Source: Vitrella brassicaformis CCMP3155 (Eukaryota > Protista > Chromerida). Taken from it: DNA of 64,000 nucleotides. The notes under the pieces were generated by a model. It had not been told where the DNA came from, did not search any database, and saw only the letters and a list, made by a program, of their open reading frames with translations. The stretch covers positions 116,057 through 180,056 of the forward strand of contig CDMY01000170.1 in assembly GCA_001179505.1 (NCBI GenBank), given 5' to 3'. The position numbers were made by a program, and so were the translations under genes. The first letter of the stretch is position 1, and every line of letters starts with the position of its first letter. This document shows, one piece after another, positions 22,056 to 61,448 of the stretch.

Positions 22056-23240
22056 TTAGATGGAGTGCCGCTTGACCAGTAGGTCGCTCATGGTGCTCAT
22101 CTTCTCAAACGCCGCCGTCAAGTGATACACCCTCTCCAGCACCTGACCATGACAACAACGCACAGCACACACACACACAGCCCCGTGTGTCTGTTTCCTT
22201 CCGCGTGTGTGTGGCGTCTGGCTCACCTCCTCGTTGTTGCTCCAGACATCGATGAGCGCCTGTCCGTAGCCGTCCTCTTTGCAGCCCTTCGCGGCCTCCA
22301 TTGCGCTGTCATTGTTGATGGCCTCCTCGATGAGCTCCACATCGTTGAAGTCAAAGCCCAGGTCGGCGAGCCGCTGTTTGGCCATGGCCACCCGCTGCTC
22401 CTGCCTCTGGCGCTCCTCATCGGCCATCTCGGCCGAGCCCCAGCCCTCACGACCACTGGTGATGTGAAACATACCGCCTGAGCAGATGGAATGAAGAAAA
22501 AATCCATCAGAGACCCTCTGTGTGTGTACCATGCAGGCAGCCAGGTGTCCCTACAGCGGAGTCGCAGCACGAGCTGGAGGTGCGCCATGTGTTGGATGTT
22601 GTAGTTGCCGAGGAGCTGGTCGTCCTTCAGTTGCGACCCAGCAAAGATGAGCCGCTGCTGGTCCGGCGGGATGCCCTCCTTGTCGTGAATCTTGGCCTTG
22701 ACCTCCTCAACAGTGTCGTACGCACTCACGTCCAGAACAAAATGCTTTCCTGACACGACACATGCACAATAAGAGAGACACTACAGGTATCTCCAGTGAT
22801 ACAGATGCTGGCCATACGCACATGTCCGTGTATCTGACGAGTATGTACCAGTCAGAGTGGTTAGAGTGATTTGCATGTCCTTGTCCTTGCACCGGCGCAA
22901 CTCAGTGTCCTTGCCCACCATGGCCTCGGTGACGTCGACCGCCTCATGCTTGAGCTGGCTGGGCGCCGCCATCTGAACGCCCACAAGTCAGTCAGCAATG
23001 ACAGGTAATCGGAATCTCCTGTGTGGGGGCATGTGCTCGGCGTGGACATACCTGCTTCTCGGGGGCCATTCCTGCGATGGTGGTGAGCATGGCGGTGGGG
23101 CTGGCGCGCTGGACGGAGGGGCGGCCGAAGATGGCGTCCACGCGCAAGTGCGAGTCGTCCATGCGCTTCCAGGCCTCCTGCAGACGCCCCAGGGCGATAG
23201 TGGACGAGAACATGGTGCTGGTAGTTCCGGCAACGGGCAT
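22056..23240 (-). CDS. Ubiquitin-like-domain protein with N- and C-terminal extensions; 5 exons
   Basis: Spliced [10 protein letters not shown]|[64 protein letters not shown]|[11 protein letters not shown]... Intron 22554-22478. ATG at 23240 or 23213. Stop TAA at 22056. Confidence 0.88.
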
Positions 23241-23370: not shown

Positions 23371-23409
23371 TGGCAAGACTGCGAGCTTCGAATAGGAATG
23401 CGAGCTAAG

Positions 23410-24808
23410 AGTTGGAGTATCAGCAGTAGCTCGGGGTAGCGAGTAGGAATGTGACGAAGCCGAAAGAAGCATTCAGTGACGACGGAGGTCTCATGGACAC
23501 GCAAGCTTGGGTCCACGCGCATCACAAGTCATGTCTCGTAGATCTCGCCCGTTACACCCCTCTGTCTTCGTGAGCTCTTGGGTGGCCAGCTAGTGCGCTG
23601 TTGTCTTGTAGAGCCTCATTCGTCGAGCTCAGATCCATCGTCACTGTCTCGCATCTCTTGCAGCATACGGCCGAGCACTCGACATTCATCTGTCGTGTGA
23701 TTGAACAGCGGACGTTTTCGTCGTGTCGAGCAGAGACGGCAGAATAGCTGCCGGCGCTCTTGGGCGGCACCAGCAACGGGCAATGATGCCACAGTTGATG
23801 CTCCCTGTCCTGTATTGCATCCAGACAGGGTGTGCGGGTCGGATGGACTATGCGTACCGTCACTGAGCTCCGCAGTAATGCGGGCGGCCATACGGCGCAT
23901 CTTTTCGTAAGTGAAGTCCACCTGCCCGATGAACACACTCCACAGAAAAGCACACATTGCGTTCGCTCTGTGAGCACCCAGCCGCACGATCATCTTCTGT
24001 ACGATGTCGTCTTGTGTGCGCCTTTCTGTACCATACGCCTTGTTGACGGCAAGTGAGAGACGGTCAAGGTCTCCAAGATTATCCATGAAGCCCTTGCTCT
24101 CGTCATAATCCCACCTGTCGTATTCGACATTTGTCTGTGTGCGCCTCTGCTCGATGCTCGGCTTGTACCTGCGACATAGAGCCAACAGAGACACATACCC
24201 ATCGTGTGTGGTGGTTGCCTCCTGGACCGTTCCTTGACAGTCCTTGCCCTCTGTGGCCCTGTCCAGTGCTCTCCACAACATCCATCTTTCCATCCTCATG
24301 TTGCGGCGTTGGACATCTGTGAGCGACTCGTCACCGACAGCTCGTCATCGGTTGACGGATGGAAGTACTTGGCCATGCCATCGATGCCATAGAACATGCC
24401 AGCGAACGACTGACGCCAGCTGTTGTAGTCGCTCTCTTTGCCGCTGAAGCGAGGAGGGTTGGTGGCGATGCCATCGGCCATCTTGTACCACAACTCACTG
24501 TGTGGCACTTGTTGGATGACGTCACGTTGCTCGGTCATCATCACCGGGAAGATGGTGTCTCGTCAGATGGTGAGGGAAGGCACGCCAGATGGCTCATCAC
24601 ACCCGAGGTGGGCTTTCATAACCAGTTGGAGTATCAGCAGTAGCTCGGGGTAGCGAGTAGGAATGTGACGAAGCCGAAAGAAGCATTCAGTGACGACGGA
24701 GGTCTCATGGACACGCAAGCTTGGGTCCACGCGCATCACAAGTCATGTCTCGTAGATCTCGCCCGAGTAACTCGGTTTTGCCCCAGTAACTCGGTCTCCG
24801 CTCTAACT
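23410..24808 (-). mobile_element. Non-autonomous gag-only Copia-like LTR retroelement, 1,399 bp
   Basis: 142-bp identical direct repeats (23410-23551 and 24624-24765). TSD CTAAG at 23405-23409 and 24809-24813. Terminal inverted ends AGTTGGAG / CTCTAACT. PBS-like GGTTATGAAAGCCCAC (24623-24608). PPT-like GAAGACAGAGGGG (23569-23557). Gag-like ORFs but no pol. Confidence 0.9.
23616..24544 (-). pseudogene. Gag-like protein of the LTR element, split into two ORFs (24296-24544 and 23616-24299) overlapping at ATGA
   Basis: PPRFSGKESDYNSWRQSF resembles the Copia gag N-terminal PxFxG...Y..W motif. C-terminal CRLC-X10-H-X4-C zinc knuckle. Frame change at about 24296-24299. Confidence 0.75.
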
Positions 24809-24834
24809 CTAAGGTCGAAGTGAAAAACTTCGTG

Positions 24835-26066
24835 ATGGAGTCAAGGAGAAGAAGGCCAGGTAATGCAGCAGGAAGCCGAGCTCAATTTGCATGCTTTTGA
24901 TGAGCTGATCACCTTTCTGCCATCTTTCAGATCTGGCAAGGCAATGCGGCCAATGGCATCTGCGCCTGTTGGCCGCTGCAGCTCTGTTCCTTTCCCTGCC
25001 GCCGCCAGCTCTGTCATTTCGCCTCCCCTCCCGCCTTGCAAGACGGTCGCAGCGCACAGCGACTGCATCTTCACCGCCGGACATGCAGCCCCGGCGAGAG
25101 CACTTCGATAGCGCCGCCCGTGCACTACTGCCTCTTGCCGTCGCGCCCTTCCTGACATCCCCTCTCCCCGCCTCTGCTGAGCCGTTCGACAAGCAGAATA
25201 AGCTCCTGAAGGTGGCCGGCCTGCCGCCGGTCAAGCCGGATGACGTGCCCAAGGGATTCAATCTGCTGGTGGACGTGCTGGATCAGTCGGAGATCTACGG
25301 CAGGGTCCGCGAGCGGGACCCCGTGATTGTGCAGTTCGTCTACCCGTCTTCGTGGCTGGTCGTTCGGCCTGTGGTGGACAAGAATGGGCAGAGCGGCACG
25401 ATCACCGCAGGCAACCAGAAGACGGAAACAGCTGCTCTGTTCGTGGTGCCTAACGACACCGGCGCGAAGGGCAAACTCAAAGACCAACCGGTGAGTATAT
25501 TATGGAGCGAGGGAAGGCGCAGCACGGTGACGTGACTGTGCCACATGCCATCATTGCGTTTGGTTGTGTGTGTTGTGTGTGTTGTGTTGTGTTGTGTAGA
25601 TGAGTTTCTGGGAGGGTTTGGTTGGCCGCTGGATATCTCAGAAGGGCGAGACGAGCAGCGGCCTGAAGATCCTCAGCAAGTATGCGGCCGAGGCGTCTTC
25701 CAGCGATGAGTACATGGTCGTCAACTACCGATATGAGCTGGCCACGGGCGCGGGATTCACAGTATACAGGTACGACGGACGGACGAGCCACAGAACACAC
25801 ACACAAGGGCGCTCGCACTTGTGTCTGTCTTTCTGTCTGTCTGTCTGTCTGTCTATCTGTGTGTGTGGGTGCGGTGCAGACGTGGTGTTGGTGCGGTGAC
25901 GACGACAGACAAGTCGGTGGAGTGTCTGTTCACGGCCACGACGGAGGAGAAGTTCCGCAAGGTGGGCCCCACACTGCAGAAGATCGTCGACTCGTTCCGT
26001 TGCTACCAAGACAGAGAGGCCATCAAGGGCGCAAGGCTCAACAAGTCAGCCGTCAAGAAAGCTTAG
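24835..26066 (+). CDS. PsbP-domain thylakoid-lumen protein with signal peptide, transit peptide and twin-arginine lumen signal; 4 exons
   Basis: Exons 24835-24859, 24931-25490, 25600-about 25768, about 25880-26066. Presequence ...LRLLAAAALFLSLPPPALS|F, then PRRE + ALLPLAVAPFLTSPLPASA|EP. PsbP-like FVYPSSW and IVDSFR. Confidence 0.8.
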
Positions 26067-61320: not shown

Positions 61321-61448
61321 GCGCTGGGCAAAGCTCGCAGCTAAGCTCGCAGATCCCAAACAGCGAAGTACGCGAGGAGTTGCATTGCATGTACATCACT
61401 GCTGGACCTCGGGAGACAGCTTCTTCAGCTGACGGCCTGTAATCGAAG

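Follow-up and report, generated by a model that had tools for sequence, protein, structure and literature searches.

A probable gag-only, Copia-derived retroelement family with AG...CT ends in Vitrella brassicaformis and its insertion sites beside a putative promoter octamer

Introduction

What kind of mobile element ends in AG...CT and carries only a remnant of gag, and what placed it where it now lies? These questions are raised by a long terminal repeat (LTR) element at 23410-24808, sense strand minus, in a 64,000-nucleotide stretch of the Vitrella brassicaformis CCMP3155 genome (C170:116057-180056; hereafter the window). Gag-only LTR elements and non-TGCA LTR ends are both already known, mostly from plants. 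The TR-GAG elements of plants are shorter than 4 kb, contain LTRs, a primer site, a purine tract and a single gag frame, and are mobilised in trans (PMC4350172). Non-TGCA LTR elements are mainly of the Copia type, have short LTRs and lie near genes; examples are Tos17 with TG..GA, the abundant TG..CT elements of lotus and the AACA/TGTT elements of Rosaceae (10.1101/137141; PMC9804982; PMC5659011). In the plant survey of such ends, only the first T was invariable (10.1101/137141). AGCT ends were not mentioned in the two papers searched for them, that survey among them, and the Vitrella genome paper (PMC4501334) contains nothing on Copia elements, LTR ends or promoter motifs.

Position-specific integration has been described for Ty3 and Ty1 at Pol III genes, for Tf1 at Pol II promoters (through Sap1) and for Dictyostelium DGLT-A. 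In these systems, which operate in gene-dense genomes, integration takes its register from a host factor bound to DNA near transcription start regions (PMC7459421, PMC5741268, PMC6101501).

Results

Structure of the window copy

The window element is bounded by two copies of CTAAG, at 23405-23409 and 24809-24813, each of which abuts it directly. Its termini, AGTTGGAG at 23410 and CTCTAACT up to 24808, form an inverted repeat matching at seven of eight positions, and both strands terminate in ...AACT-3'. The target-site duplication and the inverted ends can thus be read directly, as the original prediction had stated. A direct repeat pairs 23410-23551 with 24624-24765 at 142 of 142 positions, in agreement with the predicted absence of mismatches in the shared LTR portions. 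The LTR extent itself had to be revised, since the family LTR is 166 bp long and the two LTRs of this copy have both departed from it. By LTR alignment, the left (3') LTR (23410-23551, minus strand) retains 142 of the 166 bp and lacks the first 24 bp in the sense direction, whereas the right (5') LTR (24624-24808, minus strand) measures 185 bp, its excess over the 166-bp family LTR being a tandem duplication of 19 bp at 24766-24784.

The inner edge of the left LTR coincides with the junction of a deletion (23552-23557), at which other copies hold about 1.8 kb. Lost in this deletion were the polypurine tract, non-coding DNA derived from pol and the 24 bp missing from the 3' LTR. Because a single U3 serves as the template for both LTRs of a new copy, a start-less LTR beside a complete partner implies that the large deletion postdates insertion. 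At the other end, a stretch resembling a primer-binding site (24610-24623, minus strand; sense start GGTTATGAAAGCCC) adjoins the 5' LTR.

Two minus-strand frames make up the gag remnant: an N-terminal frame of 82 aa (24296-24544) and a C-terminal frame of 227 aa (23616-24299), the latter with a region resembling a capsid C-terminal domain and a CX2CX10HX4C knuckle. A 10-bp deletion adjoining 24331, as judged against the copies on C737 and C273, shifts the reading frame and splits gag. No protease, integrase or RT was found in the window element, and its coding remnant consists of gag-like frames only, so that it is gag-only as predicted. The window copy is a damaged, decayed member of its family and not an intact one. 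The sequence of the unoccupied site had no match in the assembly.

A family with AG...CT ends and 5-bp duplications

Whole-genome searches covered 72,700,666 bases in 1064 contigs. The DNA search identified further copies on C737, C1001, C273, C622, C986 and other contigs, together with many isolated LTRs, and yielded 42 LTR matches genome-wide. When the LTRs were aligned with their flanks, the family LTR was found to be 166 bp long, starting with AGTTGGAG and ending with CTCTAACT; LTRs of this length were seen in C737, C1001 and C273. At least seven independent insertions had identical AGTT...AACT ends and perfect 5-bp duplications. Besides CTAAG in the window, the duplications were GAGAT (C737), TCCTC (C1001), AGTGC (solo LTR on C343), CCTAC (solo LTR on C630), GATTG (an insertion split over contigs C782 and C979) and CTTGA (an insertion split over C273 and C986). 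Each such match has a chance of 1/1024. At C482 and at C756/C273, four of the five bases matched.

The original prediction had staked its reading on such recurrence. AG...CT ends and 5-bp duplications recurred at every insertion checked, and AGTT...AACT was found in place of TG...CA in all copies, in solo LTRs diverged to 81% similarity and in the pol-bearing relative on C1018 described below. Since no other placement of the boundaries yields abutting duplications, the AG...CT reading stands.

The C273 scaffold seems to fuse two insertions across an N gap (C273:13000-19500): the duplication CTTGA at its left LTR is common to the right LTR on C986, and its right LTR most resembles the left LTR on C756, from which it differs at 2/166 positions.

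Full copies are 3193 bp long (about 3.2 kb). In the sense direction, they consist of the 5' LTR, a stretch starting with GGTTATG, gag, about 1.8 kb devoid of long frames, a tract rich in purines and the 3' LTR. The purine-rich tract (14 purines in 16 bases) lies directly against the 3' LTR of full copies and is the one deleted from the window copy. The gag frame is open over 311 aa on C273 and is shorter or split in other copies. With gag as its sole coding content, the family can be described as a TR-GAG-like, non-autonomous derivative of Ty1/Copia. Region 23410-24808 of the window is very probably a decayed copy of this gag-only family, which inserts near the octamer TGCGAGCT and would be mobilised by a helper.

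Like the TR-GAG elements of plants, the family is smaller than 4 kb, has LTRs and a single gag frame, and is non-autonomous; the remainder of its 3.2-kb copies is non-coding pol debris. It differs from them in residing in a chromerid alga, in its Copia derivation and AG...CT ends, in a gag without detectable relatives outside Vitrella-type sequences, and in insertion sites that are registered to a motif.

The gag protein and the primer site

Pfam contained no family matching either the gag fragments of the window or the intact family gag. Matches in the protein atlas were confined to unnamed clusters, some of them with zf-CCHC, and a HMMER scan of 1.84 billion representative proteins returned only four matches, all of Vitrella type. 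An AlphaFold model built from a six-sequence alignment was poor overall (mean pLDDT 48.7), with residues 133-229 modelled better. When residues 133-235 of this low-confidence model were compared with 48,161 solved chains, the Drosophila copia capsid (8vvw_A) ranked first (Z 7.2, rmsd 3.8, 92 residues aligned), followed by the capsid C-terminal domains of PNMA2, MOAP1, RSV, Arc, Ty1 and MLV. A Z of about 7 is not decisive for helical proteins, and these fold matches amount to support and not to proof. The nearly capsid-only top rows support the view that the modelled protein is a retroelement capsid. The family frame ends in the same CX2CX10HX4C knuckle as the window remnant.

The GGTTATG stretch abuts the 5' LTR in the family copies. 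Drosophila copia and yeast Ty5 use half-tRNA priming, with primer sites complementary to the anticodon arm of the initiator tRNA. The family stretch, as far as can be judged from its letters, resembles these initiator-tRNA anticodon-arm sites. In genome-wide searches, contiguous anticodon-arm patterns for Met and initiator tRNAs, one of which was mis-specified, had no match beyond the element copies and a single degenerate site. Perhaps the absence of such a pattern reflects an intron in the tRNA gene.

Pol-bearing relatives and the question of a helper

Beyond the family copies, the genome protein search with the 311-aa gag from C273 found one distant relative, on C1018, with 46% identity over 294 residues. 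The match lies in the N-terminal third of a gag-protease-integrase frame, which is open over 613 codons. The whole contig C1018 is 6097 bp long. Its 5' LTR is about 150 bp long, starts with AGTTAGAG, ends with CTCCAACT and is followed by a GGTTATATGAGCCC stretch, so that LTR ends and primer-site type are the same as those of the family. The gag frame runs into a Pol_BBD protease-type domain, and the next frame contains gag_pre-integrs and rve; the predicted protease thus precedes the predicted integrase, which is the Copia order. The Copia-like affinity given in the original prediction was borne out by this relative. The gag-protease frame of C1018 was 100% identical to an MMETSP transcript, indicating expression. 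The C1018 integrase carries a frameshift and is not followed by an RT. The 3.2-kb family retains pieces homologous to the LTR, the gag and the protease-integrase junction of this element, and it is thus a deletion derivative of a C1018-type element.

A second fragment, C511:1-1618, is chimeric: a piece of family gag (aa 233-275, 95% DNA identity) is fused to the integrase-distal part of a C1018-type element. The latter part is 94.7% identical to the C1018-type element over 1042 bp, and no RT is visible in C511:1-1618.

Whole-genome gag and integrase searches of the assembly found no RT, RNase H or intact integrase linked to family LTRs. A helper element was not found, since the only candidates, C1018 and C511, are defective or incomplete. 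The prediction of a non-autonomous family mobilised in trans therefore stands as to the enzyme-free 3.2-kb copies, but a functional helper did not emerge with it. Likewise, a pol-encoding partner with AGTT...AACT ends, for which the original prediction had proposed a search, exists on C1018 as far as the ends are concerned, but it brings neither RT nor intact integrase. A gag fragment of 146 aa, 80% identical to the C1018 gag, is present on a 6025-nt NCBI contig of another public assembly and was not found in the CCMP3155 assembly; the match hints at further copies, or at strains, with the pol-bearing lineage.

The family could instead be mobilised by an unrelated canonical Copia family that merely tolerates AG...CT ends. 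The assembly contains numerous further Copia integrase genes whose frames are long and open, the next-best being only 38-40% identical to the C1018 integrase, and no dedicated intact helper was found in it. Against this, the only pol-bearing relatives of the gag, on C1018 and C511, have the same LTR ends and primer-site type, and LTRs of only 81% similarity still carry AGTT...AACT. Ends kept in pol-bearing relatives and in such diverged LTRs point to a long co-evolution of ends and enzyme, and mobilisation by an unrelated family is unlikely.

Age of the insertions

The original prediction had called the window insertion very recent, or else homogenised. The two LTRs differed at 0/142 positions in the window copy, 0/166 in C737 and 2/166 in C1001. 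Family copies differed mutually by about 4-5%, and near-identical LTR pairs beside such differences between copies fit recent activity from several source lineages.

Gene conversion or homogenisation might also have made the 142-bp portions identical within an insertion that is old. In favour of an old insertion, the window copy already shows three rearrangements and differs from C737 by 4.3% over the internal region. However, the LTR pairs of other members are identical or nearly so as well, the CTAAG duplication in the window is perfect, and the differences between copies reflect different source lineages and not age at the site. Homogenisation is accordingly improbable, and recent insertion, the first half of the predicted alternative, is plausible.

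An octamer at a fixed distance from the insertion sites

Alignment of the flanks revealed a common landmark. In seven of 17 distinct left flanks, the octamer TGCGAGCT lay exactly at -30 to -23 from the LTR edge, and three right flanks contained its reverse complement starting at +23 or +24 (in one case with a single mismatch). When the ten insertions were oriented by the octamer, all read in the same order: octamer, 17-18 unrelated bases, 5-bp duplicated target, element. The element was antisense to the octamer in seven of the ten and sense in three. Flanks and spacers are otherwise unrelated, indicating that the ten insertions are independent and not copies of a larger repeat. Overall, the duplicated site lay 17-18 bp from TGCGAGCT, in either orientation, in ten of about 13 young insertions. 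In the window, the octamer occupies 23380-23387 on the plus strand, at the position common to the targeted insertions. It is the first of a tandem pair, the second octamer of which (23399-23406, plus strand) has 2 bp in common with the duplicated target.

Of about 20 insertion sites, ten had no octamer at 17-18 bp. Most of these involved LTRs that were older or truncated, or had one flank only; the diverged solo LTRs on C482 and C630, for which both flanks are available, were both among those without it.

The octamer occurs 7692 times in the genome, as against 2061 occurrences of the reversed control. Tandem pairs 4-14 bp apart numbered 357 genome-wide, as against none for the control. In the window, four of eight octamers preceded a long frame on the same strand by no more than 300 bp, compared with a background of 0.13 (p ~0.01), although this is a weak test. 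The octamer is probably a promoter element, and we treat it as a candidate. Among the matches listed, a literature search for the octamer returned primers and unrelated text only. Tandem pairs are also present in the window at 2436-2463 and 61332-61351, in addition to the pair at 23380-23406.

The window insertion lies between a minus-strand frame of the ubiquitin family (22223-22756; Pfam E 7e-22) and a plus-strand frame (24969-25535) without a Pfam or PDB match. Just downstream of the latter is a (TGTC)n-type microsatellite (25822-25867), and in the copy on C622 the right LTR is cut short by a similar GTTC repeat.

The link to the octamer could be attributed to a general preference for open promoter chromatin, or to the survival of harmless insertions, with no ruler-like tether. 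Such a view can draw on the plant non-TGCA Copia elements, which are also enriched near genes without a motif ruler (10.1101/137141), and on the fact that the octamer is missing from half of all family sites. The spacing, in contrast, is fixed at 17-18 bp at ten independent sites with unrelated spacers and flanks, and at the genome-wide rate of the octamer the probability of finding it at one fixed position in seven of 17 left flanks is about 2e-26. Chromatin preference or selection cannot yield single-base registration and is therefore insufficient, which makes this explanation very improbable. Tethered, promoter-precise integration is the best explanation of the octamer spacing.

The AG...CT ends as LTR ends

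A cut-and-paste DNA transposon with 8-bp terminal inverted repeats, 5-bp duplications and subterminal direct repeats posing as LTRs would account for the inverted ends (AGTTGGAG / AGTTAGAG) and the lack of TG...CA, but it is excluded for practical purposes by 166-bp direct repeats exactly at both ends, solo repeats with their own 5-bp duplications on C343 and C630, a purine tract and a primer-site-like stretch where the LTRs meet the internal region, a gag whose model matches the retroelement capsid fold, and homology to a gag-protease-integrase element, with no transposase present. We retain the LTR reading. Insertion independent of integrase was also considered and rejected in view of the exact 5-bp duplications at all insertions (PMC11042837 for this mode).

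The family resembles the plant non-TGCA Copia elements in its Copia type, its very short LTR (166 bp), its 5-bp duplications, its recent activity without TG...CA and its proximity to genes, here in the form of sites beside a putative promoter octamer. A CT-3' at one end is also common in the lotus elements. The Vitrella family differs from the plant elements in having changed symmetrically at both ends, AG...CT being extended to AGTT...AACT. The U5 end reads, in the sense direction, CA and then ACT, and one may speculate that the ends are ancestral CA-type ends followed by three unremoved bases. The conservation of the AGTT...AACT pair across diverged LTRs of an alveolate Copia lineage bears on the requirements of integrases for DNA ends.

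A possible mode of integration

The observations can be combined into a conditional scheme. Family RNA would be packaged by gag, and the enzymes of a Copia helper would copy and insert it in trans, the helper integrase joining 3' ends that finish in ...AACT and not in ...CA. The integration complex would be positioned by a protein bound to the octamer, or might read the octamer itself, and by analogy with the tethering of Ty1, Ty3, Tf1 and DGLT-A, such positioning would lead to promoter-precise insertion. Once inserted, the window copy would have undergone the 1.8-kb deletion, which took away the purine tract along with the beginning of the 3' LTR, and would have acquired the 19-bp duplication. 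In its full form, namely a Copia lineage whose integration is positioned by an octamer-bound factor on TGCGAGCT, at 17-18 bp and in either orientation, with an integrase that joins symmetric ...AACT-3' ends, this is a tentative proposal, in which we place slightly less than even confidence.

As in Ty3 and Tf1, the insertions lie at a fixed distance from a landmark (ten insertions, 17-18 bp to TGCGAGCT). The landmark here, unlike those of Ty3, Ty1, Tf1 and DGLT-A, is an 8-bp putative Pol II-type promoter word; the element is of Copia type and non-autonomous, and the tether is suggested by analogy. Single-base registration beside such a word is a new addition. If the proposal is true, the family would parallel, at Pol II promoters, the start-site-precise targeting of Ty3 and provide a natural example of integration directed to promoters in an organism that is neither a fungus nor an amoeba, and its insertion sites would show where an undescribed general promoter factor of Vitrella binds. 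The registration would then serve as an independent pointer, made by evolution, to a protein-occupied promoter element in a close free-living relative of the parasitic apicomplexans, whose promoter architecture is poorly known.

An irregular arrangement was seen at C581:1-300, where partial LTR pieces lie head-to-head and in tandem directly before a full LTR. The flanks there, GTTGG and CCAAC, are reverse complements of each other, and the arrangement is possibly nested or of a fold-back type.
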